Both the position numbers and the translations under genes were made by a program. From Takakia lepidozioides (Eukaryota > Plantae > Bryophyta), in contig CM060734.1 of NCBI GenBank assembly GCA_030704615.1, positions 41,354,001-41,418,000 on the forward strand: a DNA stretch of 64,000 nucleotides, read 5' to 3'. A model generated the notes under the pieces. The model had not been told where the DNA came from. It saw nothing but the letters and a program-made list of their open reading frames with translations, and did no database searches. This document shows, piece after piece, positions 5,123 to 54,300 of the stretch (position 1 is its first letter; each line of letters opens with the position of its first letter).

Positions 5123-6740
5123 TGTGTGTGTGAATGACATCCACACAGAGACTGGAGAGAGAGAAAGAGATCTTTTTGGTAATGTGTAAAATTCCGCTTG
5201 TTTTATGCACCCCTGATGTATTGACGGATAAGATGTGTGGGTTATTAAGATGCGGTTTCAAAGCTGGAGGAGGCCCTCCAAATAAATCCCCGCAAGCATG
5301 ATGCACTTTGGTGCCTTGGTAACGCCCACACGTCCCAAGGATTTCTGGTGACTGAAACTGACAAGGCCAATGATTTTTTCAAGAAAGCTGCACGCTGCTT
5401 TCAACAGGCAATTGATGAGGTGCCCCTCTGTCTCACTTCCTGCAATTTACTTGAAGTCTGCCAAGACAGTGAACCTTTCCTTGACTAAGGAAACTCCTGT
5501 GAATTTGCATCAGTTACTGGGACCGTGTCTGAGTCCATAGCCCATCATCAATAATCAGATGCGTAAGTCAATCTTAAGGTTCTTGACAAGGTTCAATACC
5601 TCATCTCCCTTATTGACAAGGTTCATACCTTATTTCTCTGGAGGGATAGTATGTAGCTCAGTAGCACTGTGGCCACATCAGCTGTGGTCCTGGGTTGAAA
5701 CCGCTCGTCGTCTTCTGGCCAAATAACATGGTCTCCAGGGGTTGGAAGGTGGGATAGACCTTCCCAAACTAGGTCATTGTGGTTGATATTCCTCTGTTGA
5801 AAAGAAGTCTCAGGTCTCATTTCTGACATGACGATAAAGTTACATAACTGTTGCCTGCCCCTGGATGGCTTACAGATGGCAGCTACTAACTAGGTTATGG
5901 TTGACTACCATTCTTCTTCACCTCTCTCTTCTCTTTGGGGGTAAACTTAGACCTCAAATTAGATGTTCTTCTTGCTGTTTCGGTTAGGCAGAGTGCCCGG
6001 ACTTCTTTTTCTTTTGACTACCTTGGCCATGAAATGCGTTGAATAGGAGAAGGGAACCAGGTCTTGAATTTGTTATGTGGTTGGTGCGCAGGAACCCCAA
6101 AATGAGCTCTATCAGAAGGCCCTAGAGATGACTGACAAGGTACTATCAATTTTCATGATTGGAATTGGTGTTAAACTTCAAGAAGGCACAGATATAGACA
6201 GAGAGATTATAATGGCTGTCACAGTGTTTGACTTTTATGAATTGGTGTGATGATGGTGCAGGCACCATCACTGCATCAAGAACTCCAGAGACAGCTTGCC
6301 TCTCAGCAGGTGGTGTTGGGAGGTGGTTCAGCTCCAACTGGTGGTGCCGCTCCAAAGGTACTATGGATCATGCCACATTTGATAGTGGTTTCTAACCATT
6401 TATTGGCAACTGCCAATCCTCTAGATCTTCTTAGAAAAGGAAAAGTGTTGTTATTATATGGCAAAGGTGAAGAATTTTTGCTCTCAGTGAGATGTTATAA
6501 AGGACGATTGAGGCTGAAGGTCTTGCTTGAGACGAATTCACCCCTGCATGTTATATTTTTTGACTTTGATTGTTGCTCTTGGTATCTGGTTTGCAGGGGA
6601 GTAAGAAGAAAAAGGATGACAGTGACTTCAAGTACGATGTGATGGGGTGGATTGTGCTGGCTATTGGAGTAATGGCCTGGGTGGGCTTGGCCAAGTCGTC
6701 CATGCCGCCCCCACCAGTTTCCCCATCAATTCTTAGATAG
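3877..6740 (+). CDS. TOM20: Plant mitochondrial import receptor TOM20
   Basis: Six exons (about 3877-3978, 4500-4578, 5250-5419, 6092-6139, 6262-6357, 6597-6740): [20 protein letters not shown]; [15 protein letters not shown]; [15 protein letters not shown]; [10 protein letters not shown]; [11 protein letters not shown]; [31 protein letters not shown] (C-terminal TM anchor). Confidence 0.93.
4868..5090 (-). mobile_element. 5'-truncated LINE 3'-end copy in TOM20 intron 2
   Basis: Reverse-complement match to 8450-8665 and direct match to 12950-13140; abuts a (GA)n/(TG)n tract at 5091-5132. Confidence 0.75.
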
Positions 6741-7149
6741 AGTGGGTGTAGCAGTGAGGAATCTGAGATTTTTTTGTATCTACCTCTCTTTGCTACATGG
6801 TCTGAATGGGGGGACCCCGACTATGTTATTTCTACAACTGATCAATGCCTTGGATAAAAAATGCATGATCTGATCTGATTTTGTAATTACTAATATGATT
6901 GCTTGATTCTTTTTGGGGGAGTGCACATTGGACAACGAAGTCTCACAGCCAAGTCTCAGACTATAAAGATGGCATAACCAATTAGTGTCTGTTGAGTAAC
7001 CAGCGGAAGTGCAACTTGGTCTTGATTAGAAGGGCTTGGTTTGTGAGTAAGTTGACCCTTAAGATGTGGAATATTCTTGCCATACTGACCGCCCATTAGT
7101 TTTTCTGAGATTGCTGAAGCAACAGAACATCTTAGAACAACTAAAGGGC

Positions 7150-8058
7150 TATAATGCTAGTGGTATTGTCATTAAGTTAATTAAGCATGGTGGCAATGCT
7201 ATGGTAGTGGAAGGCAAGGGATTTGGGTTGAAGGTGGGTCATGCCACCATACCAGCTCTTATGTCTGGTGATGAATTCGTAGGGGCAGGGCCCTAGCGCA
7301 TTTCTCATCCAATCATGGGGAGTTGATTGATTGTGCAAGGAGGTGCTTCAACCTGTGGAGGCTACAAGCCAATGTTAGAAAATGCATGGTGGTGGCCCAT
7401 CCTGGGGAGGAGGTGGGGATCTCAAATGGACATGGGGCAGTGAAGAAATGCCATGTGCTCCTTTCCTACAAATGTCTAGGCTAGGTGTTGAGTTTTCCTC
7501 CAATTGTAACTGTGATGCCCTAAGATGATGAAACTGTCTTGGAAGCAAGACCGTTCTGTTTAAACAGGCAAAGTCCTGGTGGAAGAAGGTCGAGGAGATT
7601 TTCAAGTACCTGAAGGAAGGAGGCTGTAGTGTCTGAGGCCATGTCAGAAGCACAGAGAAAGGGGAGATTGTCAATGCCCAATGTGCGGGCAGATTGAAGA
7701 CAACAACGATTCATGATGTCCAGGTTATCCCCAGAGTGACCCCCTTTGGGAGTCGGGACTTGGGACCATCAAGAACATAGTCCACCTCCGTTCAAGAATC
7801 TCAAAATCTCAATGCCAGTCTAAAGCCCTGGCCCTGTTGGGTCTAATTGTTGGGCGGCTCAAATATTGATGCTTGTGTGAAGGGATTTCTAGAGGAAATC
7901 TGGAAAGCCCGCACCAATTGTTTATAACAAGGTAAGTCCCACCACTGGAGTGAACCAGGTAGTGTCCGTTCCCTCTTGTTCCGCCCAAACTGGGCACTGG
8001 TGTATGGCCACAAGGCTAGAGCAGACAATGTATCATCAGCACATTCTCCCTCTCTCTC
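7150..8058 (+). mobile_element. Heavily decayed non-LTR retrotransposon (RT remnant plus 3' end)
   Basis: GFGLKVGHATIPALMSGDEFV resembles the RT motif ...IPALxxADDxV, and LGVEFS resembles YLGVxF. 7830-8058 matches the 3' end of the repeat family at 8440-8665 and ends in (CT)n. Confidence 0.55.
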
Positions 8059-8214
8059 ACAGCTCTGAGGCCGTTGTTTGGTTGTCATTGCCACTCAACC
8101 CCACACTTTGTTTCATCCCATGATATCTAAGCTTTAAGGCTACAGTACACTTTGGAGGCTAACTCTTCCAGCTTCTTTGCATTCCTCCCTCTCTATCTAA
8201 TAGTAACTCAGGGC

Positions 8215-8665
8215 GTGAAGCCTACCTTTGAACAGCAAACAGATGCAGAGAGGAACGAGGGATTGCAATTGCCCGTTGTGTGGGCAACCTGAAGACAATA
8301 CTCATTTTCTGATTCATTGTCCCGGGTACTCTCATGAGAGAGACGCCGTCTTCAAATCCATCAAGGGAAATGTGCCTGAACCTCTGTTTACCAACTTGAA
8401 AGTCTCGAGGCTGAGCCAAAAGCCCAGGCCCATTTGGGGCCTGGTTATTGGGCAAACCACACACACAGCAGATTGATGCTTGTGTGAAAAGATTTCTAGA
8501 GGATATCCGGAAAATTTCGATTAATAATCGGTTCCAAGGTAAGTAATACTACTGGCGTCAGCCCCCGACAAAGGTAGTTTCTGTCCCTTTGTGTTCAGCT
8601 CAAACTTGTGCGGGGACAACGGCCACACGGCTATGGCAAACAATATCTTATGAGTACATTCTATC
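8215..8665 (+). mobile_element. LINE ORF2 C-terminus (CCHC zinc finger) and 3' UTR
   Basis: CPLCGQPEDNTHFLIHC (Cx2C...Hx4C) is followed by IDACVKRFLEDI and a 3' UTR shared with four other copies in the window. Confidence 0.75.
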
Positions 8666-26743: not shown

Positions 26744-29700
26744 TCACCAGTAATCACCACAAGAACAAACCCCATCCTGGAAATGGTGAAAGCGGTTGGC
26801 ATCCCGTACAACAATTGCTCGGCCAACAATCTTCGAGATGAACTTGGTGGCCGTGTGGCAGTCACCACACACCCGAAGATTCTTGATGACACGGATATGG
26901 GTCCCAGGAACCGTGCTGATCAACCCAAAAGCAATGGCCAGCTTCTCACTGTGGTGGCCAAGAGAAAATTCCTTCTGCTCCTCCTCCAAGTCACGCAACA
27001 CAAAACGCATGTCAGGCATGTACCCAGCCTCCTTCATCTGCCCAGACAATCTGTTCAGCTCAGCGTGGATTTCCTCAATTTGTGGATGCAATTCGTCTTC
27101 TGCAACAAATTTATGCACCCGATTGTCCACCTCAATGCAGCTGCACCCTGGCTCCTTTCTGACTCCTCTGCCCTCCATCATTTTTCTCACCTTTGCAGTG
27201 TCATCCCACCTGCCAGCTGCAGCATAGATGTTTGAAAGCAGCACATAAGTGGCAGCGTGCTGTGGATCCCACTTGAGAACAGATTTTGCCGCACGTTCTG
27301 CCACCTCCACGAGGCCATAAATTCTGGAGGCACCAAGCAAGGCTCCCCACACGGAAGCAGATGGATCAATTGGCATACTGTTGATTAAGTCCTCTGCCTC
27401 CTCCAGTCGCCCTGCACGGCCAAGAAGGTCTACCATACAGCTAAAATGCTCTGCTGTTGGAGTGAGGCCATAATCTTGACTCATGGAATCAAAGTAGTGA
27501 CCACCTTCATGCACAAGGCCAACATGGCTACATGCAGAAAGGACACATACAAAGGTGACACCATCCGGCTTCAAGCCTTCCTGTTGCATTCGTTCAAATA
27601 GTTGCAGGGCCTCCCTACCACACCCATTCTGTGCATATCCTGCAATCATCACGGTCCATGAGACCACATCTCGCCTAGCCATATTGTCGAACACTTGAAG
27701 TGCATCCTTTATGCTCCCACATTTCGCATACATGGAAACAAGGGCAGTCTCCAGGATAGTACCTGCTGCAATTCCAGCTTTGATGATGTCAACATGGACC
27801 TCTTTGCCCTTTTCCAAAGCTGCCAGGCTGGCACAAGCACTGAGAATGCTACTGAGGGTGACCTCATTGGGTGTCACCCCTTCACATATCATTTGTTCAT
27901 AGGTCTCCAAAGCCTCACTACAACACCCCTGCTGAGTGTATCCTGCTATCATTGCATTCCATGAGACAACATTTCGTTCGGTCATAGTGTCAAACACTTG
28001 ACGCGCATCCTTCATGTTCCTGCATTTGGCATACATGTCAACAAGGGAAGTTTCCAGAATGATATCTGGTGCAATTCCAAATTTCATGACATCAGCATGT
28101 ACCTCCTTACCCTTTTCCAGGGCTGCCAGGCCGGCACATGCATTGAGAACACAAACGAACGTGATCTTGTCGGGCATCATCCCTTCCCGTATCATCTGCT
28201 GATACGTGTTTAAAGCCTCCCTACCACACCCATGCTGAGCATATCCTGCTATCATCGCATTCCATGAGACCACATTCGGCTTCAAGCCTTCCTCTTGCAT
28301 TTGTTCAAATAGTTGCAGGGCCTGCCTACTGCACCCATGCTGAGCATATCCTGCTATCATCGCACTCCACGAGATGACATCTCGGTTAGCCATATTGTCA
28401 AACACTCGATGTGCATCTTTCATGCTCCCACATTTGGCATACATGTTAACGAGGGTATTCTCCAGAATGATATCCAGCGCAATTCCAGCTTTCGCTATGT
28501 GAGCATGGACCTCTTTGCCCTTTTCCAGGGCTGCCAGGCTGGCACACGCATTCACAGCACAAATGAATGTGATCCTGTCAGGGGTCACCCCTTCCTGTAT
28601 CATCTGCTCATAGATCTCAAAAGCCTCCCCACCAAGACCATGCCGAGCATATCCTGCAATCATCGCACTCCACGAGACCACATTTCGTTGCACCATTTTG
28701 TCAAACACTTGACGGGCCTCCTTTACACCCTTACATTTGGCATACATATTGACGAGGGCAGTCTCTAGAATTACATCTGGCTGAATCCCAACTTCTATGA
28801 TGTCTGCATGGACCTGTTTGCCTTTATCCAGGGCTGCCAGGCTGGCACATGCATTGAGAAGACAAATAAATGTGACCTTGTCCGGCATCATCCCTTCCCG
28901 TCTCATCTGCTCATAGACCTCAAAAGCCTCCCTACCAAACCCATTCTGAGTAAATCCTGCAATCATCGCACTCCATGAGACCACACTTCGTTCAGCCATA
29001 TTGTCAAACACTTGCCGTGCATCCTTCATACTCCCACATTTTGCATACATACTGACAAGGGCAGTCTCCAGAATGATATCTGGCCGAATTCGAGCTTTGA
29101 TAATGTGACCATGGACTTCCCTGCCATATTCCAGAGCTGCCAGGCTGGCACACGCCTTGAGAATGCAAATGAATGCAACTCTGTCAGGCATCACCCCTTC
29201 ACGTACCCTCTGCTCATAGATTTCTAGGGCCTCCCCACCAGACCCATGCTTGGCATATCCTGTCATCATTATATTCCAAGTAAAAATATCTCGTTCAGGC
29301 ATTTTGTCAAACACTAGGCGAGCATCCACCATACTCCCACACTTGGCATGCATGTTGATGAGGGTATTGTGTAGAAAGATGTTCGGTTTGAATCCACTTC
29401 GGAAAATGTGGGTTTGCACCTGCTTTCCCTCTGCTAGGCCTTTAATCTTGATGCACTCCTGCAAGAGACACACACATGTATCGCAGTCTACTGACATGTC
29501 TCCTTGGTTCAAAATGTCCAAAGCCTCTTTAAGTCGCCCTGACTTACATAGCCCCCTCAAATCCCAACAAGTCCCAGAAGTATTCTTAGGGACTCCCTCT
29601 CTTGGTCCTCTTTCAAAGACAGTGGCCATGTTGGAGGTGCCTGCTTTAAATGGTGCTGCTGTTGCTTCAAGTTGACCTATCCATGCAGGCTTCTTGTAGC

Positions 29701-31695
29701 TATCAATCCACAGTGCCTCAATGGTATTCTTGAGCTCGAACTCTGGTTGTTTAGGATTGATCTGCACCCAGACTTCATCCCTGCCTCCTTCAGCTATCCG
29801 TGCAACCTGAATAAATCCCTCCCCGTGCCACACGGAGCAAAAACCACCCCCACTAGCCACTAGTTCCTCGCTGAATTGGTTGCTTATAAAAAGTTTGTCT
29901 GAGTGAAGATGATCACAAACATTGCTACTGTCTACCCATGTAGGACTAATCCCCACGGGATACTAGGACTCCAGGGTTGCCCGCCCTTTTTCAAGCTACC
30001 AGGGTATAAAGGCCAATATGTCCATACTGCTCAAATTAATGACAGGGGATTCAGTGTTGATTTAATGACTGGCAAAAGCATAATGCTCAATAGGACTATG
30101 TCAATAACGCCACTGCCACTGCAGGCCTCCACCTTGAATATGACACATGGCTGTGGGCAATACGAGTTGCACCTCACACCAAAGTAATAGTTACTGACCA
30201 TTGCCACACATCACCTCAAAGGATTAGAAAAGTTCCCCTCTCCAAGACAGATCCACCTGACAAGGCAACTTCCAGGCCATGAGGTAGTGTGCCTCTCGTT
30301 TCCACTAACCCCAACCAATAAATAAAAGAGAAAAACAAATTTTCACAAGAAAGGGCCAAATTACATGGAGATGATATTGTCAAGGCAAAGAGGATAACCG
30401 GTAAGGAACCTAAGAAAAGAGCCATCCTTAGCGACATGCCTGCGAGTAGTTTAATTGATGACAGCGGTTAAAGATGCCATTAGAATCAACCTCACAGTTA
30501 GACCTGATTCATTTCATTGAGAGTTAGGTGATGCTTACCCCTAGCTGCTTCCAGCTTCTCCATTTGAACACCTAGCCAAACAGGTTTCTTATAGCTGTCA
30601 AACGACAAGGCCACATCGGTACTCTTATGTTTGGAATCTAGTCCTCTTGGATGGATCTGCATTCACGCTCCATCCCTGCGGTATTCAACTACCCCTGTTT
30701 ACACAACCAACATGGAGAAATCATCCCGCTCATCGCAAGTAATGACGCAGGTAACCCATAATTTACATAGAGAAAACCACCCATCTGCCCGAGACTAGTT
30801 CCTATGCCAAATTGGTGGCAAGACTAGAACAAAGTGTGCAGAAGAGAGAATGAGAGAATATAGGTCCCTGCAAGCCTTGGCTACAGCATACACTTGCATG
30901 ACTAATCCTCTGCATATTAAACCTAGCTCCATCCAGCACCCATGATCCTCTAGACCTCTAGCTTGCAGGAGAGTGACAACTGTGAATGTGATTGACCAGT
31001 CACAGAAAATAGTGTTAAATTAGTGAACTGGCATGCCCTCCTACTAGAGCACGAGGTCCATCCAGAACTGCTCTACTAGCCCTCTAGATTGTAATGTATA
31101 TGGCACATCTGTGACGATGGGTGAACAACCAGTCCGAGTGTTGAGGAGAAAGGCCCAGCGATAAGAGAGAGAGTGGGCGCTATCCTTAATTAGAGGGAAA
31201 TTTTCTCAGAACATCCGGTTGTCTACTTCTGTACAAAACATAAAAGGCATTCACCTCGTCGCTTCGATTGTCCCACCATTGACTGGGTTTTGAAAAATTC
31301 TCATTGCAAAAATTCTCCAAGTCTACGTTTTGGCTTCTTGGACATTTTCCTTCGTTGGCAACTTCCTTGCTGAATCTGAGCAGGGTAGGTGGACCCTCAT
31401 TGTCCTCCACCTCCAAGTTGCCTCCTTGGTCATTCCCCTCTCGATAGACAGCTTTCTCCTCTACTGGTCTCAGCCCTGCAATTGGCTTGAAACCGTTTGG
31501 AACAAATGTCACTGCGGGGAGACTTGGAAAATGCAGAGGGGCGGCCAGAGTGTGCCGCCCACCCTTTCTTGAAGCTTCCATTCCAGAACCAGTCATGGAA
31601 GCAGCGTTGCCTGAGGTTAAACAAGTAGAGGATATGTCCCCCATGGGTGCAATCCGTAGTGCGGGCGAGGCCATGCTTGCTCCTTCTCCGGCCAT
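26744..31695 (-). CDS. PLS-class PPR protein with E1/E2/DYW deaminase (C-to-U editing factor) and an N-terminal PDF-like motif; two coding exons (31695-31255, 29761-26744)
   Basis: About 21 P/L/S motifs, PG box EPGCSCIE, intact HSEKLA...CGDCH...DYW. A phase-0 GT donor at 31254 and CAG acceptor at 29764-29762 join [10 protein letters not shown] to INPKQPEF in frame. The start codon is uncertain. Confidence 0.9.
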
Positions 31696-47286: not shown

Positions 47287-48149
47287 GACATCAGCCCACC
47301 ATACTTCTCATACTGTTATATTTTGTCCCTATCTCTCCACACCCATACGCCCCTCTTGTACGCTGATCCATCTCTCCCTAAGTACTAGTACCATTTCTCC
47401 CAAATAAACAGACTGTACGAGGCTCCACCTTCACAACAGAAAAAGACTCCTAGTGCAGATCCTACCATGGCGCGGCCAGCCCTATGTAATCGAAAGAGAG
47501 GCTGATCATTGTCATGTTCAAACTCCTATTAACCCCAAGTGCCAAAACTCATTTTCACCGTGGCCCACTGGGCAGCAATTATATTTTTGAGAACTCGTGA
47601 TACGGCCTGTGAAATTTCTCAACAGCCACACAAAACTGGATGTACATGGTGACAAAGGTTTGCACACATGTAAACATCCACTTTGCTGTGGCTGCTGACA
47701 AATCTCACAAACCGTATGGCACAACCCCCCCCCCACTTCACCCTCACCACCAATTTGCGCACGACGACCTGGTTACCTTGGATTTGTAAAAGAGAGAAGA
47801 CAAGCCCAGAGAGGACGAGGTGGCCAGGCACGAGGTGCTGGTCAACACCCTGACCTCCACGTCCTGGCCATGTTGAGCTTGCCCTTGGCCTCCTACTTCT
47901 GGACAATACGAAAATATGGACAAATATGGATAAATACGGATTAATATCGAAAAAAATGAAAAAAAATGAAAAAATATAGATACATACGAATACATATGGA
48001 TAAATATAAAAAGAAATTAAAAAATGAAGATTTGCAAGATTTTGCACGATGTGGGGATGGCATTGGCTCGGCCTGCTGTACCCAAAAGGTGTTCTCCACG
48101 TCATTGCAGATTTGGTAACCAGGATTATTTTTTTCCTTGAGTGAATTAA

Positions 48150-48385
48150 TCGTTCAATCAGCTGTAAGTGTTACTTTAATGTAAGTGCACAGTGTGTCGC
48201 CCTGGTGGTTCGGGGTTCAAACCCGCTGCCCTGCCTGGTGGGTGGATTGTTCGTAACTGGCTGGTCGGGTGTGTGCCTAATGGCTTATCTGAAAGGGGGT
48301 TAATTTTTCCCCCTCCTCAAGGGCCTGAATTGTGAGCAGTCGCTCCCGGTTTCCTTTTGAAAAAAAAAAAAGAAAAAAAAAAGAA
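48150..48385 (+). mobile_element. Putative tRNA-derived SINE
   Basis: Pol III B-box-like GGTTCAAACCC at 48214-48224 and an A-rich tail at 48360-48385. The A-box and TSD are not clear. Confidence 0.45.
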
Positions 48386-48825
48386 GGTCACATACCTTAT
48401 ATACAAATCTGGGAAAGCCTTGGTGTCTGAAGGATAGTGAATAACTTTCAAGCCATCATTCTCAAGAATATCATGGCAGACTTGTTTAAGGTCAAATTCC
48501 ACACCCAGTTCTTAGAAATTCCTGTACAATGATATGATGAAAATGTGTAGGTAACTGGTGTATGACAAGTCAGCAGTTTTGCTAAATCCTGACGCCTGGA
48601 GTGGGTAGAGTGAAGCTCACTCCAAGGTTCTTCTCATGGAAGACATTGCTCCCTGTGCAAGTCAAGTGGCCCTTTGTGGTATGTAAGTAAATATGTTGTG
48701 TAAATATGTTGTGTTGTCCATGCAGTCATGGTCCAGATTCCACCAGTTCAGGTGGGCTTGAGGGGAGTGAGTCGTTAGAAAGTTTGGTTACATTTTGTCA
48801 GACAATTAGGGTGGGTCCATGAGAT

Positions 48826-51393
48826 ATGGCGGCATCAATTCAACGCTTTAGAGGGGGGCTTGCATTGCAAGGCTCCATCATTGATGATGCAGCCAATGAA
48901 TTTGGGCGAACCTTAAAAATTCGTAAGAATCCAAGCATGGCATACCACATTAGTGTGTTAAGCAAGGAAGAATACCGGTCTGTTGGGATGCGAGATGACG
49001 ACGTGCCAACAATTCCCATTGATCACTTGTATTTCGTCGGGCTAGGTGGTTGCAATCTCCTGTCAGATACAGCAGTTTACTGGGTTGTTTGCATCTGGGG
49101 TGCAGGTAACATTTGGAGGAAATCACGCGGTCTGCCAGTGAAGGATTTCCACATCACACTCACCAACAATGACATCCACAACGTCGCGAAATTTGCTTCC
49201 TCTCTTTTGGATTCAACGAAATTGATATCAGCTTTTCCTGATTTTGCACCGGAGAAGCAAAACCATGTTCTTCAACATGTTCATGCCATCCGGAGCGATC
49301 TCACATTGCCACTTGCTGTGGCTAGTGCAGTTGGGCAGTTAGGATCTGCAAGGCACTTTATTCGTTTGGGAGATGCGGCTGTTGCTGCAAATCCGAAGTT
49401 GTCCATGCTCTCGTACGCCCATGCACTTCGCCTGGATCCTTCATTGGAGGGGTACGTTGCTCGTCGGTTTCGTCACCTATCGACTCTGACCCACTTTGGG
49501 CCAGTGATGTTGGTGTCGGAACGAGAATCTATCCCTGCTGAGCTTGTTGACATCCTTGTTGGACCTTGGTGTGACGATGCCCGTCGGATTGGACATACTC
49601 TGATGCCTCTTGAGCCTCCCGGAGCAATTGTGGCAGAAGGTCGAGAGCGCTTGTGGTATGGATCGCATGAGCTGCCTCGATTTTTTTCTTGGATTGTTCC
49701 CTACTTCCTGGCTGGAATGTCGACACCACGCAGTGAGAAAGATATAGACGCACTTGCCGAGCTCGGCATTAACCGAATTCTGACACTGACACAAGAAGAG
49801 CCACTTCCGGTGTCATGGTTTGCGTACAAGACAATCCAGAACATTTTCATTCCGATTGCAAATTACAAGGCGCCCACGTTCAAAGAAGTGGACTATTTCA
49901 TCGACGCCATCAATGAGGAAGATACTTGTTGGTTGGTTCATTGCAGAGGAGGCAAAGGGAGAGCTGGGACGTTCCTCGCATGTTACATCGCACTCTATGG
50001 CTTTCAAAACCCGGATTCGCAAGCTCAAGAGCAACCCAAGCCTTGTTGTGATGCAGGAACTGTTATCAGATGGCTACGCACCATGAGACCAGGCTCAATT
50101 GAGAGCATGGAACAAGAGAAATTCATCTCAAAATGGATCAGATATCGGTGGAAGCAAAAGACCGAGGCATTGCCTGAGCCCACAGGTTCAGGGTTTAGTG
50201 TTGAAGGCCATGTTCCTGAGAATCCTCAACTTATCTTACTAGTCGGTCTCCCAGGAAGTGGAAAAAGCTGGTTTAGTTCTGCTCTACTGAAGCGGAAAGA
50301 GGGAGTAGTGGCTGTCATCTCACAAGATGACAGTGGTTCAAGGGCGCTATGTGAGACTGCCATCGGCCAGCGACAAGCTGGGAAATTGATGATCCTCGAC
50401 CGCTGCAACCCATCCAGGGAGGACCGCAAGAATTGGCTGGCGCTCGCCGACGTTGGCGAGAAAGCCCTGGCGGTGTACTTCGATGTCGACCATACTCTTT
50501 GCACTCAACGACTGGACCGACGTATCCAGCATCCGACTCTTCGAGCGGGCCGATCGTTTCACGCAGTAGAGCAGATGAAGAAACAAATGGAAATACCAAC
50601 ACTAGACGAAGGCTTGAATGCCGTCATCACCATTACCTCTTTCGAAGCATCCCGAGAAGTCATCAAATTACTTGGCGGAGTACCCCCACTGTTCAAATTT
50701 CCTCGGACCCAACACCTCATCAACTTGGGTGCGGCAACAGCGGACGACAAGGTTTGCGACAAAGGGTGCTTAGCTCGCTACGGGGCCACAGTGGTGATCG
50801 AAGAGAAGATTGATGGGGCAAATTTGGGCATCACTCTCGACCACAATGGCAATCTTCTGGTACAAAACAGGAGCCACATTGTCACCTCCCGATCACATGC
50901 ACAGTTCCGGCGCTTGTATATGTGGCTGGAACGACACTCGAAGGAGCTACATACAATATTGCACCGGGACGAACAGTTTCCTGAGAGATACATCCTGTTT
51001 GGAGAGTGGCTTGCTGCCACACATGCGATCCATTACGAGAAGCTGCCAGATTTGTTCTTGGTGTTTGATTTTTACGACCGTGTCTCGAATACATTCGCAT
51101 CAAGGGAGCATGTATCTCGGCTGCTGCAAGGTACCACAATCCATCAGGTACCTCTTATCCGAACTAGCTCAGAGGGGGTCACCGAGGAGGAGCTGAAGTC
51201 ATACATGAGCAGAACTTCGTCTTTTTATGATGGACCCATTGAAGGTGTCTATGTCCGGTTCGAGGATGCCGACAGAACATGCACGATTGAGCGCGGCAAG
51301 GTGGTGCGTGCGGGCTTCATCGCAGGTAACGAGCATTGGGCCAAGGGCATCATCAGAGAAAATGGTGTTGTGCACACCAAGGAGGTGGTATAA
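48826..51393 (+). CDS. Intronless multidomain RNA repair enzyme: 2H phosphoesterase + CX5R (PTP/DSP-fold) phosphatase + P-loop polynucleotide-kinase-like domain + ATP-dependent RNA ligase ('Swiss-army-knife' type)
   Basis: Uninterrupted 855-aa ORF. 2H motifs YHISV (48943) and FHITL (49147); HCRGGKGRAG (49939); GLPGSGKS (50245) with SQDD and ILDRCN; ligase KFPRTQHL, motif I EEKIDGAN (Lys at 50806), LFGEW, FLVFDFYD, IEGVYVR, RGKVV. Confidence 0.92.
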   Translation: MAASIQRFRGGLALQGSIIDDAANEFGRTLKIRKNPSMAYHISVLSKEEYRSVGMRDDDVPTIPIDHLYFVGLGGCNLLSDTAVYWVVCIWGAGNIWRKSRGLPVKDFHITLTNNDIHNVAKFASSLLDSTKLISAFPDFAPEKQNHVLQHVHAIRSDLTLPLAVASAVGQLGSARHFIRLGDAAVAANPKLSMLSYAHALRLDPSLEGYVARRFRHLSTLTHFGPVMLVSERESIPAELVDILVGPWCDDARRIGHTLMPLEPPGAIVAEGRERLWYGSHELPRFFSWIVPYFLAGMSTPRSEKDIDALAELGINRILTLTQEEPLPVSWFAYKTIQNIFIPIANYKAPTFKEVDYFIDAINEEDTCWLVHCRGGKGRAGTFLACYIALYGFQNPDSQAQEQPKPCCDAGTVIRWLRTMRPGSIESMEQEKFISKWIRYRWKQKTEALPEPTGSGFSVEGHVPENPQLILLVGLPGSGKSWFSSALLKRKEGVVAVISQDDSGSRALCETAIGQRQAGKLMILDRCNPSREDRKNWLALADVGEKALAVYFDVDHTLCTQRLDRRIQHPTLRAGRSFHAVEQMKKQMEIPTLDEGLNAVITITSFEASREVIKLLGGVPPLFKFPRTQHLINLGAATADDKVCDKGCLARYGATVVIEEKIDGANLGITLDHNGNLLVQNRSHIVTSRSHAQFRRLYMWLERHSKELHTILHRDEQFPERYILFGEWLAATHAIHYEKLPDLFLVFDFYDRVSNTFASREHVSRLLQGTTIHQVPLIRTSSEGVTEEELKSYMSRTSSFYDGPIEGVYVRFEDADRTCTIERGKVVRAGFIAGNEHWAKGIIRENGVVHTKEVV

Positions 51394-54300
51394 TTCATGG
51401 GATGAACGCAAATTTCACAGCAGGGGTGACAATCGACGAGAGAATCCTTCAGCCAGAGGGCATCATCGAGCTAGTGTGAGTTTTGACACTTGAATCTGCA
51501 GTGCAAATCCTATGCCTGTGACATGGGGGCAAGCAGGTGTTTATCAAACAAGGAACAACAAATCCAATACACACCTGAAAATTGTAAGGAATTTCAGAGC
51601 AGCGTCTGGTGGGGATTGACACCCATGAGGTACAGCAACCCCTACTAATAAGTCAGGACCAAATCCAGACATCCTTGGGTCAGCTCTGATCTGCCACAAG
51701 CATGCCTGTTGCTGGAGGTCATCCTTTTGTTCCATGTGAAGAAGGAAAAATCTGAGAACATAATAGCATTCTCTTTGTTGGCGATGGTGACGTGCATTAT
51801 TGTGGGAATGCTGGCTCAGAAATAGGGAGAGTAGGACCCCTACACAGAAGGGTAGTCTGGAAACACATTGGAAATGACTAGAAAAACTAGCAATTAAATA
51901 TTTGAAGAAAAAAGTTCTTTCTGGGAGTAGACATTGGTTGAGCAGCATTGACAAAATGTGATGCCACCACTCATTAAACTATAATTGTTGGCAAATTTTG
52001 GCAGTGACCTGATTTTGGGCTGCAGGATGCCTATTACACTCCGGTGGACTCCATATAAAGAAGGCACTTCTCAAAAATTGATGTGTACAAAAGCCACATG
52101 AGAACTATGAACTACATCATCCAGATTGGCCGTGGCCCCTACCTATGCCTTCTTTGAGTTTGGTCTCTTTTTCTGTCCAGCTTTTGGTGCAGGTTTACTC
52201 GCTGGTGCTGGAGTTGGAGGGGGAAGGGTGGCAGTGAGGTGCTGCTGAATGGCAGCAAATGGGTTCGACTTAAACTGTGGGTGAGCAAGGACTGCTGCCA
52301 GCTGCTTAGTCTCCTTCTCACTACAGAAGGCACATTAAAATGATCAGTTCTGACTTGCCAAAAGAACTATCACAAATTGAAATCAATTTGGCTCCAGACC
52401 ACAAAAACAAATGTGGACACTTTCATGACATGGCTAAGGCAATATAATGCCTAATTGTTGTCGACATTTGAAGGCATCAAGCTCCCGCACTTCAGTAATC
52501 TGCTTAGAATTTGATTTCAATGAGTTCAGTGTCCCACTTGGATATGTTAGGACAAATGCGTATTCAGCTGACTGCGCTATTGCACAGCTATGGATTTCTC
52601 TGCACATGGAGAATGGGTTTAGGCTCATACACTGTATGATATACATCTCCATTTCATGCAAAATAATGTAATCTGCTCACACTTGAGGGATCAACCTGGT
52701 AACAGGGAACTTACACTATTTTTTGCTTTGCTTTGCTTCGAAGGATTTTAGTGGCTGGAGCAGCAGTTGGAGTGCCAAGTGTGGGCAAAAACTCCGCAAG
52801 AGATGAGAGATCATTGAGTGTTTTGCCAGACTGTGATCTCCGTCTCTTCTGCAATTTTCAATTGCAAAACATCTCATTTGAGGAAGTATAGCATCAATCA
52901 GTACAACATTTGATTTTCTAGGGTTCACATAAGGAATCCCGCTTGAAAGTACTCCCTGGGGATATGACTTCTACTCAACAGTGAGTCATACTTGTGTAGT
53001 GTAAAAGAGTGATGAGTCTAGAAAAGCAGATGCAGGATTATGATTGACACCAATCTTTTAATCATGTGTTTATCCAGCTATTCTCTGACTGAGAAACAGA
53101 TTGCAAAAGGTCAAAAACTTGGGAAAAAAATTCATGAATGTTTGAGAATAAACCTTTGAGATGGTTTTCTTGGCAGATAGCACTCGTTGTGTCTCTTGCA
53201 ACTCTGCAAAGAACACAAAAAGGCAACACATAAGTGGATATCGCTATACATGCAAAGACAAAGGCCACAGGTGCCAGATGCCAGTAGAAGTCTAAACTTC
53301 TGTAGAAATCTACAAGAGCTCCTAAATGGGTGCAGCCAGGACTTTCTAAGGGACACATATTTGGGAAGAACCATGGGAAAAATGAGAGGAGATGGATAAA
53401 AAAATTTACTTAACAGGAAGCGAAGCTGCTTAGCCATTTTTCTCTTCACACTTGCACGCTCCACAGACTTTGACACCCCTTGTTCTTCACCATCCCATTG
53501 ACTGACACAAATCCACATGTAAAAGATGTAAGAAATATAGTCTTCTCATATTGCCAGCCTAAACACAAGAATCTGTACCTTAAAAACTGGAGAAGTCCTT
53601 TTCATTCAAGAACATTCTATCACACCCATTTCTTGGTAAATCTCCCCATATTATTCTTGATGTTAGTCACGGATGTGTACGACTACAAAGAATGTGCACT
53701 TAATGTAGAAACCTAAAACCCAATGTCATCTGATGCACAAAGTACAAGTACAAAATCGAGACGAGATTCCTTTAAAAGAATTATCCAGGTTACCCTGCAA
53801 TCGCAATTGCAACTAGTGGTTGAGTCGGAACACACCTTGTTGTATCATCTTGTGTCATGGGTTCCGCGTCTCCCTGCAACCACACCAACACCAGGGCTTC
53901 AGGAAAGAGGGGCATTCGTGGAACACTAAAATTCACTAACCTTTGTTTTTTCCTGAAATGACGAAACCAGGGTGTACAAGACATTCCATGTGATAAAAGA
54001 AAATTCATGCGGAGACATCACCTTAGCGGATGTTTCATTTTTCGTCGCTTTCTCCCGAACTTTCTGTCGGGCTGTCTTTTTCTTCACCGCTGTCCCATTC
54101 CATTCGCTGTGTCCTCACTTTATCATATTCTCAAATGCAACTAGCTGCCATTCCTTTCTATAGTCCGCATAACTATTTACTAATCTCTAGGGCGCGCACA
54201 AGGTAATTTTTCCCACAATATGGCTGTCCAGTATTCAGACTGTAAATACTAACAAACTCTGTACTAGCACGTTATCTGTGGCTACTCAATCTTGTGCTGA

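Follow-up and report, generated by a model that had tools for sequence, protein, structure and literature searches.

A Swiss-army-knife family RNA repair gene in mosses, most likely acquired from a fungus

The "Swiss-army-knife" (SAK) family of RNA repair proteins is said to have been defined computationally by Burroughs and Aravind in Nucleic Acids Res in 2016, and its architecture is predicted to form a complete RNA repair kit. The same logic is followed by T4 Pnkp with Rnl1/Rnl2 and by bacterial Pnkp/Hen1, where the 2',3' phosphate is taken off, the 5'-OH is phosphorylated, and ligation follows. The tRNA ligases Trl1 and AtRNL are likewise heal-and-seal enzymes for breaks that carry a 2',3'-cyclic phosphate and a 5'-OH and, according to PMC11571804, combine a 2H-type CPD, a P-loop kinase and a ligase in one polypeptide; a comparable activity is predicted for the moss protein described here. 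Trl1 is devoid of a phosphatase, and it both needs and leaves a 2'-PO4, which is later removed by Tpt1.

We describe herein a gene of the moss Takakia lepidozioides that does not fit the canonical plant tRNA ligase. With a probability of roughly 0.75, we read it as a resident bryophyte nuclear gene for a SAK RNA repair enzyme, which passed from a fungus to mosses and was kept by selection. The gene is a single intact ORF (48826..51393, + strand) that begins with ATG, contains no internal stop, encodes 855 aa plus a stop, and has no intron. It is the sole copy within the window, i.e., the whole stretch of 64,000 nucleotides that was analysed. A first-pass annotation of this DNA had noted the intact 855-aa ORF and had assigned to it four catalytic modules in the order 2H, CX5R phosphatase, P-loop kinase and ligase. 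Both claims held up, the latter through Pfam matches and through the motifs, all of which are in place. The count of modules rises from four to five, as a TPR-like helical domain, absent from that annotation, sits between the 2H and phosphatase modules. The features are as follows.

47782..48363, strand not given: dispersed high-copy repeat, context only and not part of the gene (source-sample read depth)
48826..51393, + strand: SAK-family multi-domain RNA repair protein (intact intronless ORF and Pfam)
48859..49179, + strand: 2H phosphoesterase, 2H-SAK (PF22547), aa 12-118 (Pfam 7.8e-17, above cut-off)
48946-48954, + strand: 2H motif H41-I-S43
49150-49158, + strand: 2H motif H109-I-T111
49216..49620, + strand: TPR-like helical domain, aa ~131-265 (profile matches, AF2 and VIA-align)
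49675..50127, + strand: Cys-based DSP/PTP phosphatase, PTP-SAK (PF22784), aa 284-434 (Pfam 5.6e-57, full model 1-153)
49939-49962, + strand: CX5R loop HCRGGKGR, H372-C373-RGGKG-R379
50230..50598, + strand: P-loop polynucleotide 5'-OH kinase, AAA_33, aa 469-591 (Pfam 2.4e-13)
50245-50268, + strand: P-loop GLPGSGKS, G474-LPGSGK-S481
50788..51273, + strand: ATP-dependent RNA ligase nucleotidyltransferase, PF09414, aa 655-816 (Pfam 6.9e-29)
50806-50817, + strand: ligase motif I KIDG, K661-I-D-G664

The two histidines of the 2H module, H41 and H109, are invariant across 39 aligned family members. The assignment of the 2H fold rests on Pfam, these motifs and weak Foldseek similarity to Acb1 and Usb1, both 2H enzymes, because Foldseek gave nothing below 1e-3 for the two-domain N-terminal model and VIA-align of this model was dominated by its TPR part. 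The TPR-like domain itself (aa ~131-265) produced profile matches to TPR proteins down to 1e-9, and its AF2 model (pLDDT 92) aligned with TPR domains at VIA-align Z scores of up to 9.2. The phosphatase module matched DUSP23 (1.3e-14), and its H372, C373 and R379 are near-invariant, being kept in at least 94% of 49 aligned rows.

In the kinase module, residues G474-S481 and D501 are conserved in the family alignment. This module matched the RNA 5'-OH kinase RazKIN (PDB 9d8a; 1.3e-15), mammalian PNKP (5e-6) and, in NCBIfam, PNK-3'Pase and Pnkp. Ligase residues D663, G664, E727, E806, G807 and K825 are invariant, and K661 is kept in at least 90% of 45 aligned rows. Among PDB sequences, the ligase profile found at best a putative Aquifex ligase, and that weakly (E 0.011); for that reason structure prediction was applied to this module. 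The AF2 model (pLDDT 90.4) retrieved as its top folds the Naegleria RNA ligase, archaeal Rnl3, REL1 and T4 Rnl2. The order 2H-PTP-kinase-ligase within one polypeptide is collinear with that of fungal members at 95-100% coverage. Taken together, the Pfam 2H-SAK, PTP-SAK, kinase and ligase matches bear out the earlier placement in the "Swiss-army-knife" RNA repair family, and, judged by its sequence, the 855-aa protein is a SAK-family member.

Membership in the family does not by itself settle what the protein does, and its true job might be DNA-end processing, as by PNKP, or a programmed RNA step, such as non-canonical splicing or circularisation. Of the characterised relatives, the one nearest to the kinase phosphorylates 5'-OH ends of RNA and DNA alike (PMC11571804), mammalian PNKP, which also matches the kinase module, is a DNA repair enzyme, many fungal homologues are annotated as "ATP dependent DNA ligase", and "RNA circularization protein" is the name given to some bacterial relatives that consist of the ligase only. 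However, the cyclic or 2'-linked phosphates targeted by 2H enzymes occur only in RNA, and in the structural search with the ligase module every top match was an RNA ligase, with DNA ligases ranked much further down. As a general expectation, the host presumably already has a canonical tRNA ligase. We thus regard a job of either kind as rather improbable and keep to the reading of a repair enzyme for broken RNA.

The substrate of such an enzyme would be an RNA break with a 2',3'-cyclic phosphate and a 5'-OH, as generated by metal-independent RNases or ribotoxins. The 2H module would first convert the cyclic phosphate to a 2' or 3' phosphomonoester, which the Cys373 phosphatase would then strip to leave a 3'-OH. 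The kinase module would phosphorylate the 5'-OH, and the ligase, once adenylylated at Lys661, would seal the nick. The TPR-like module probably brings in a partner or a substrate complex. This four-step pathway rests on homology, because the literature searched yielded no enzymatic assay of a SAK protein; the predicted substrate and a putative biological or defence role of the moss protein are read from sequence in the same way.

Three other plant genes, PPR-DYW, SYF1 and SPT16, lie in the window alongside the SAK ORF. The nearest relative of this SYF1 is that of Sphagnum (82% identity), and these neighbours point to a bryophyte host. The setting of the SAK gene had been described in the first-pass annotation as decayed TE debris in an accessory zone, and a partial check gave a mixed outcome. 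In favor of that description, a high-copy repeat lies upstream, at 47782-48363, where read depth in the source-sample run contigs reaches 34,660 versus 27.6 for the SAK gene, and the ORFs that flank the gene have no Pfam match. On the other hand, the flanks have no repeats in common with the remainder of the window, and SPT16, a conserved housekeeping gene, starts only 4.7 kb downstream of the SAK ORF. The upstream repeat has loose ends with a tRNA-like look. ARAGORN and Rfam searches over 44-56 kb found no tRNA and no Rfam family.

Beyond T. lepidozioides, ten plant copies of the gene were found, all moss-like; the moss label for those other than that of Ceratodon purpureus derives from clustering, synteny and plant-type neighbours. 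The C. purpureus orthologue maps to a 16-Mb chromosome, where the plant genes on either side of it (ABC1, TPP-enzyme and BOP1) carry introns, and the TPP-enzyme neighbour is common to three plant loci. All plant copies are intronless, and they fall into two deep groups. Sphagnum, Physcomitrium, Marchantia and algae contributed no SAK protein to the matches, with the proteomes of the first three present in the database. Nor did protein searches and an exhaustive search of representatives, both of which cover predicted proteins only, detect an orthologue in other land plants or green algae. Among 1.84 billion representatives, the plant proteins form one 50% cluster, and the next relative is fungal (~46%).

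These relatives bear on the possibility that contamination or chimeric assembly attached a fungal contig to plant DNA. Short-read contigs do fail to bridge the high-copy repeat at 47.8-48.4 kb. Nevertheless, the source sample has a 6.4-kb contig that extends from 48318 to beyond 53000, and the GC3 of the SAK gene (0.51) equals that of its host, represented by plant genes nearby (0.46-0.55). Moreover, the protein differs by 54% from any fungal one and is 62-74% identical to the products of genes that sit within other moss assemblies, in one case on a chromosome. Genuine host genes surround the gene in at least two assemblies or samples, and an independent sample of the same organism, from another study, carries it with four SNPs, three of which are synonymous. 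No sign of a chimeric join was seen, and we consider the chance of one negligible.

The phylogeny of the family was inferred by maximum likelihood. In a careful IQ-TREE analysis, plants were monophyletic (100/100) and grouped with a 17-row fungal clade, clade B (Elsinoe, Myriangium, Bisporella, Tilletia and Kockovaella), again with support of 100/100. The plant clade sits on a stem of 0.39. In a 241-row tree rooted with the stramenopile Heterosigma, plants fell inside a 153-row clade of fungi and rotifers, with supports of 99, 86 and 100; to arrive at this nesting, the tree must be rooted by outgroup or midpoint, and parsimony of distribution invoked. Without a root, the tree has a three-way node that joins plants, fungal clade B and the rest, and by itself it is compatible with a root placed on the plant stem.

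Such a root would suit vertical inheritance, in which the ancestor shared by plants and fungi already had the gene, which was then lost from all Archaeplastida except some mosses. In addition, the family occurs in a stramenopile and in oomycetes and is thus not strictly fungal. Vertical inheritance would, however, require many independent losses, in all algae, liverworts, hornworts and vascular plants as well as in Sphagnum and Physcomitrium. It would also have to accommodate plant proteins that are ~46% identical to their nearest fungal counterparts yet group with one fungal subclade (100/100) rather than outside fungi, an outgroup that places plants three supported nodes deep in fungi, and the lack of introns in every plant copy. 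We hold this scenario to be very unlikely. Orthologues spread across streptophyte algae and land plants, which the first-pass annotation had named as evidence against its proposal of a horizontal transfer from a fungus or microbe, were not seen among predicted proteins; a fungal source gains support from the position of the plant proteins beside fungal sequences, their single plant-only cluster, and their fungal next relatives. Most likely, therefore, on sequence evidence, a moss ancestor took the gene from a fungus by horizontal transfer.

Ascomycota and Basidiomycota are mixed in the fungal gene tree, which therefore points to no exact donor. The source might even have been a non-fungal carrier of a SAK gene of the clade-B type, such as a protist, a virus or a vector associated with fungi. 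Many members of the sister clade are metagenome or SRA proteins, clade B mixes distant fungal classes, as if the gene moved between lineages, and bdelloid rotifers acquired the gene separately. Nonetheless, in the sister clade and in the two clades that successively enclose it, every member with a name is a fungus, and we give a non-fungal donor little credence.

The fungus-to-moss transfer is old, neither recent nor species-specific, because it predates a deep split within mosses, dS is saturated, and the composition of the gene is fully host-like. Where dS is unsaturated, dN/dS between plant copies is 0.13-0.20, far below 1. The purifying selection that had been suggested is thereby supported, and the alternative outcome, a ratio near 1, was not observed. 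From its entry into a moss ancestor onwards, the gene would have passed down vertically, still intronless and with purifying selection acting on it, while in some moss lineages it was lost or decayed.

As to expression, run X5, from the independent sample, covers the ORF and contains GT-AG splice joints in the adjoining region; its RNA label is a guess backed by this splice-joint argument, and its contigs are unstranded. The view that X5 is a DNA skim was rejected on account of the canonical minus-strand GT-AG joints and the coverage gaps. A second RNA-like run, X7, provided no coverage of the SAK gene. For one plant relative, three runs yield the same ~4.2-kb contig, with shared ends and collinear with a longer contig. 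The independent sample probably carries the SAK gene as RNA, and expression in the host species is probable.

Transfers of this kind are common from fungi to bryophytes, and 1,809 HGT-derived families have been recorded in streptophytes (PMC12513842). The SAK family was also already described and in Pfam, so nothing is overturned by the present case. Its occurrence in plants is apparently unreported: no published report was found in the literature searched. The gene provides a clean multi-domain example of an old fungus-to-moss transfer, and its parallel capture by bdelloid rotifers suggests that the enzyme is useful as a stand-alone module. As a speculation that we advance tentatively, mosses and bdelloid rotifers, both desiccation-tolerant and always in contact with fungi, may each have acquired this five-module enzyme from fungi on their own and put it to use as a self-sufficient defence by RNA repair, directed at fungal ribotoxins or at breaks caused by drying and rehydration, with the Cys-based PTP performing an undescribed type of RNA 2'/3'-phosphate healing. 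If so, thanks to PTP healing the enzyme could dispense with the 2'-phosphate and Tpt1 step on which sealing by canonical eukaryotic tRNA ligases depends. Being conserved, single-copy and intronless, and present in transformable mosses such as Ceratodon, the gene offers a tractable plant system for the questions raised here, namely the target of repair, PTP-type healing of RNA ends, and the part of RNA repair in ribotoxin defence or desiccation tolerance.

Of the systems described, the SAK family is the closest. The moss protein shares with it the 2H domain, helical linker, PTP, P-loop kinase and PF09414 ligase, in the same order and in ~850 aa, as well as the catalytic residues, and aligns over its full length with fungal members at 40-46% identity. 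It differs in its moss hosts, as the other named members come from fungi, bdelloid rotifers, a stramenopile and oomycetes, and in its first 2H motif, which is HxS in the window protein and HxT in nearly all other members.

Among individual modules, the kinase (aa 468-595) has RazKIN of Mucorales as its nearest solved relative. The P-loop is shared, and the essential Asp36 of MciKIN corresponds to D501 in the moss kinase. The Mucorales kinase differs from it in being a stand-alone 176-aa protein that is GTP-dependent and acts in tRNA splicing (PMC11571804). For the ligase, the best structural matches are the Naegleria gruberi RNA ligase (Rnl5 family), archaeal Rnl3 and T4 Rnl2 (Foldseek E 1.5e-8 to 1e-5; TM 0.50-0.57), which have the covalent nucleotidyltransferase motifs I, III, IV and V in common with the moss module; identity is 13-18%, and their accessory N- or C-terminal domains are missing from it.

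The kinase is weakly similar to bacterial Pnkp. The T4 and bacterial systems employ DxDxT or metallophosphoesterase phosphatases and separate polypeptides, whereas the moss protein has a Cys-based PTP and a 2H esterase fused to its kinase and ligase. An order of modules unlike that of the canonical plant tRNA ligase had been pointed out at the outset, and the comparison, which takes in the fungal enzyme too, agrees: Trl1 and AtRNL are arranged as ligase-kinase-CPD, the reverse of moss SAK, and have no TPR module, the ligase domain of Trl1 is a distant fold match to the moss module (rank 26 or lower, TM ~0.48), and the PTP phosphatase is present in the moss protein.

We show herein that the window contains one copy of a gene for a Swiss Army Knife (SAK) RNA repair protein, in which the catalytic motifs of all four activities claimed by the first-pass annotation can be located. 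The four Pfam domains, each above its curated cut-off, reproduce exactly the proposed order of 2H esterase, phosphatase, kinase and ligase. The protein matches both Pfam models named for the "Swiss Army Knife", and the family given in that annotation is therefore correct.

Features of the window and of the SAK protein (aa, residues of the plus-strand ORF; motifs were read in the ORF)
26744-29956, minus strand: PPR-E-DYW RNA editing factor, 1070 aa, intact, intronless (DYW deaminase domain, E 1.2e-41)
48826-51393, plus strand: SAK ORF, ATG start, 855 codons, no internal stop
aa 12-118, plus strand: 2H-SAK domain (E 7.8e-17)
H41-I-S43 and H109-I-T111, plus strand: 2H motifs
aa 284-434, plus strand: PTP-SAK domain (E 5.6e-57)
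H372-C373-x5-R379, plus strand: Cys-phosphatase loop
aa 469-591, plus strand: AAA_33 kinase domain (E 2.4e-13)
G474-LPGSGK-S481, plus strand: P-loop
aa 655-816, plus strand: RNA_ligase domain, PF09414 (E 6.9e-29)
K661-I-D-G664, plus strand: ligase motif I

The four-activity description holds for these modules and omits a fifth. A profile of aa 1-290 from 39 family members matched TPR proteins over aa ~143-215 (best E 1e-9); in the N-terminal AlphaFold model (pLDDT 92.1) a small alpha/beta domain precedes stacked helix pairs, and aa ~131-265 of this model were aligned by VIA-align to many TPR domains (Z up to 9.2). Together, the profile, the model and the alignment place a predicted TPR-like module after the 2H esterase and ahead of the phosphatase. 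The weak Foldseek matches of the alpha/beta part were to 2H enzymes, namely phage Acb1 (probability 0.98) and Usb1, and the phosphatase module is similar to DUSP23-type Cys phosphatases. The best match of the kinase is RazKIN (E 1.3e-15), an RNA 5'-OH kinase from Rhizopus with a crystal structure; mammalian PNKP and bacterial Pnkp are more remote. PMC11571804 demonstrates GTP-dependent phosphorylation of RNA and DNA 5'-OH ends by RazKIN and its homologue in Mucor, for which an Asp is essential; the equivalent residue here, D501, is conserved in the SAK alignment. By sequence, no close relative of the ligase module was found among solved structures; the top folds for its model (pLDDT 90.4) were Naegleria Rnl5, archaeal Rnl3, trypanosome REL1 and T4 Rnl2, with E values of 1.5e-8 to 1e-5 for the RNA ligases and DNA ligases much lower in the ranking. 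Among 45-49 family members, D663, G664, E727, E806, G807 and K825 are invariant, K661 is nearly so, and the P-loop and HCx5R loop are likewise conserved. In all but a few degenerate members, both 2H histidines, H41 and H109, are retained. The first 2H motif has a Ser in the window protein versus a Thr in nearly all other members, a variant that still fits the HxT/S definition.

The PPR-E-DYW gene confirms a land-plant nuclear context. The window also holds a long exon of the splicing factor SYF1 and exons of SPT16, the first of which lies 4.7 kb downstream of the SAK gene. SYF1 shares 82% identity with its Sphagnum counterparts, versus 70-75% with those of other mosses, liverworts, lycophytes, ferns and seed plants, which puts the host among the bryophytes, on an early branch of the mosses outside Sphagnum. 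The GC content (0.50) and GC3 (0.51) of the SAK ORF are the values of these neighbouring plant genes. Moreover, a single 6.4-kb contig from the source-sample run extends from 48318 to past 53000, and X5, a run on a different sample of this species from a separate study, contains 65% of the SAK gene words and differs at four single bases, of which three are synonymous changes. Given this contig and the second sample with its SNPs, contamination, or a chimeric join of the gene to plant DNA, is therefore very unlikely, and the plant neighbours with equal GC and GC3 likewise speak against it. Directly upstream lies a high-copy dispersed repeat (47782-48363), whose contig depth in the source-sample run was 13,880-34,660 versus 27.6 over the SAK gene. 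Its loose ends are tRNA-like (…GGTAGCTCAGCTG and …GTTCAATCCC…CCA); ARAGORN and Rfam called no tRNA or RNA family on the repeat, which may represent a tRNA-derived SINE family. At 47506-47507 the source-sample run and X5 both carry an extra 10 bases compared with the window, which may reflect a small assembly error or a heterozygous indel.

Expression was judged from unstranded run contigs. X5 contains joints from 52320 and 52599 to 52715 with minus-strand ends GTAAGT...CAG, that is, alternative introns at 52321-52714 and 52600-52714, and has no coverage of 48364-48914; it therefore is, or at least contains, RNA. Contigs of X5 span the ORF from 48915 to past the stop, which makes transcription of the SAK gene in Takakia lepidozioides probable; those of a second RNA-like run, X7, have no coverage of the gene. 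For one relative, a ~4.2-kb contig recurs in three runs with ends agreeing within ~20 bases (5') and ~11 bases (3'), is collinear with a 10.4-kb contig extending beyond it, and resembles an unspliced mRNA carrying long UTRs. A spliced minus-strand transcript (~51500-52850), whose flanking exons are covered by X7, is convergent with the SAK gene; the ORFs in this interval had no Pfam match.

Nine plant protein clusters are 62-74% identical to the window protein over its full length, and a tenth relative is interrupted by a single in-frame stop. The Ceratodon purpureus copy (M758_8G169100) also has 855 aa and no intron, and is flanked on a 16-Mb chromosome by the intron-containing genes ABC1, TPP-enzyme and BOP1. 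The TPP-enzyme gene is also found upstream of the SAK copies in a 201-kb ENA contig and in L017, the contig of the interrupted relative, and the common gene order speaks for vertical descent within that group; another plant copy adjoins a GH17-X8 glucanase gene. The plant copies form two deep groups, the window gene with P0001 and Ceratodon with the rest, between which dS is saturated. Wherever dS was measurable (0.64-1.6), dN/dS was 0.13-0.20, far below 1, which indicates long-term purifying selection on the entire five-module protein. In P0001, the closest relative of the window gene (799 aa, contig L003), the 2H domain is missing its first half and first motif and gives no 2H-SAK Pfam match, and stop codons occur in every frame of the 149 bases preceding the P0001 start; this lineage may be doing without, or losing, the 2H module, or the contig may not be complete. 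The L017 copy (5732-8293; 81% identical to that of Ceratodon) has a stop in place of a conserved Trp (W416 of the window protein), dividing it into a 2H-PTP half and a kinase-ligase half; a recent pseudogene, a polymorphism or an error in assembly could each explain this.

A HMMER search against 1.84 billion 50%-identity representatives gave 507 clusters below 1e-30; all plant SAK sequences fell in one cluster, and the next match was a fungal protein (46%). Named members are overwhelmingly fungi (Agaricomycetes, Tremellomycetes, Ustilaginomycotina, Microbotryomycetes, Dothideo-, Leotio-, Eurotio- and Pezizomycetes, one mucoromycote, one blastoclad), with bdelloid rotifers among the remainder; a raphidophyte alga has a PTP-kinase-ligase version, and Phytophthora and bacteria have the ligase module alone. 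Orthologues across streptophyte algae and land plants, the case named at first pass as contradicting a transfer, were not seen: among predicted proteins, including the Sphagnum, Physcomitrium and Marchantia proteomes, green algae and land plants outside the moss clade gave no SAK match.

Plants were monophyletic (100/100, ultrafast bootstrap/SH-aLRT) in an IQ-TREE analysis (LG+C20+F+G4, PMSF; 59 rows, 832 columns) and grouped with a 17-row fungal clade, clade B, of Elsinoe, Myriangium, Bisporella, Tilletia and Kockovaella (100/100); a quick tree search agreed with this. In a 241-row FastTree rooted on Heterosigma, the plant clade lies three supported nodes deep (99, 86, 100), within a 153-row clade whose named members are otherwise only fungi and rotifers. 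With this root the plants are nested in fungal sequences, in line with the proposed fungus-to-plant transfer. Topology alone leaves room for a root on the plant stem instead, since plants, clade B and the rest join at a three-way node; outgroup or midpoint rooting, together with the large number of losses implied, is all that excludes this root. The fungal part of the tree is discordant with the fungal species tree, so that, under a transfer from fungi, the donor is narrowed no further than a fungus with a clade-B copy. Clade B itself mixes Dothideomycetes, Leotiomycetes, Ustilaginomycotina and Tremellomycetes, apart from the Agaricomycete, Eurotiomycete and Pezizomycete copies, which suggests ancient paralogy or gene transfer among fungi. 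Full-length rotifer proteins (P0042, P0057, P0084, P0097; Adineta and Rotaria) form their own clade (100/100) beside Agaricomycetes (89/84), away from the moss clade, a position that points to another transfer of the five-module gene, into an animal and independent of that into mosses.

The SAK family is already known and has Pfam models, and transfers from fungi to bryophytes are common, with 1,809 HGT-derived families in streptophytes reported in PMC12513842. As far as the searchable literature shows, what is new is an old, conserved, moss-wide but patchy SAK gene, together with its independent capture by rotifers. A role in defence against fungal ribotoxins, or in repair after desiccation, is attractive; similar ideas have been put forward on RNA ligases that bdelloid rotifers gained by horizontal transfer (PMC11258130; PMC10809525), where other ligase genes are concerned or the SAK gene is not identified. 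The literature searched contained no assay of enzymatic activity for any SAK member, and biochemistry or a defence phenotype would raise the interest of the gene.

The module set would suffice to convert a 2',3'-cyclic-phosphate/5'-OH break to 3'-OH/5'-phosphate ends and seal it. The 2H module would open the cyclic phosphate, the Cys373 phosphatase would remove the resulting monoester, the kinase would phosphorylate the 5' end, and the ligase, adenylylated at Lys661, would seal the break. The window protein has every testable feature of SAK-family membership and lacks those defining the canonical plant tRNA ligase, from which it had been distinguished at first pass. Compared with Trl1-type tRNA ligases, the SAK design would dispense with the 2'-phosphate and with Tpt1.
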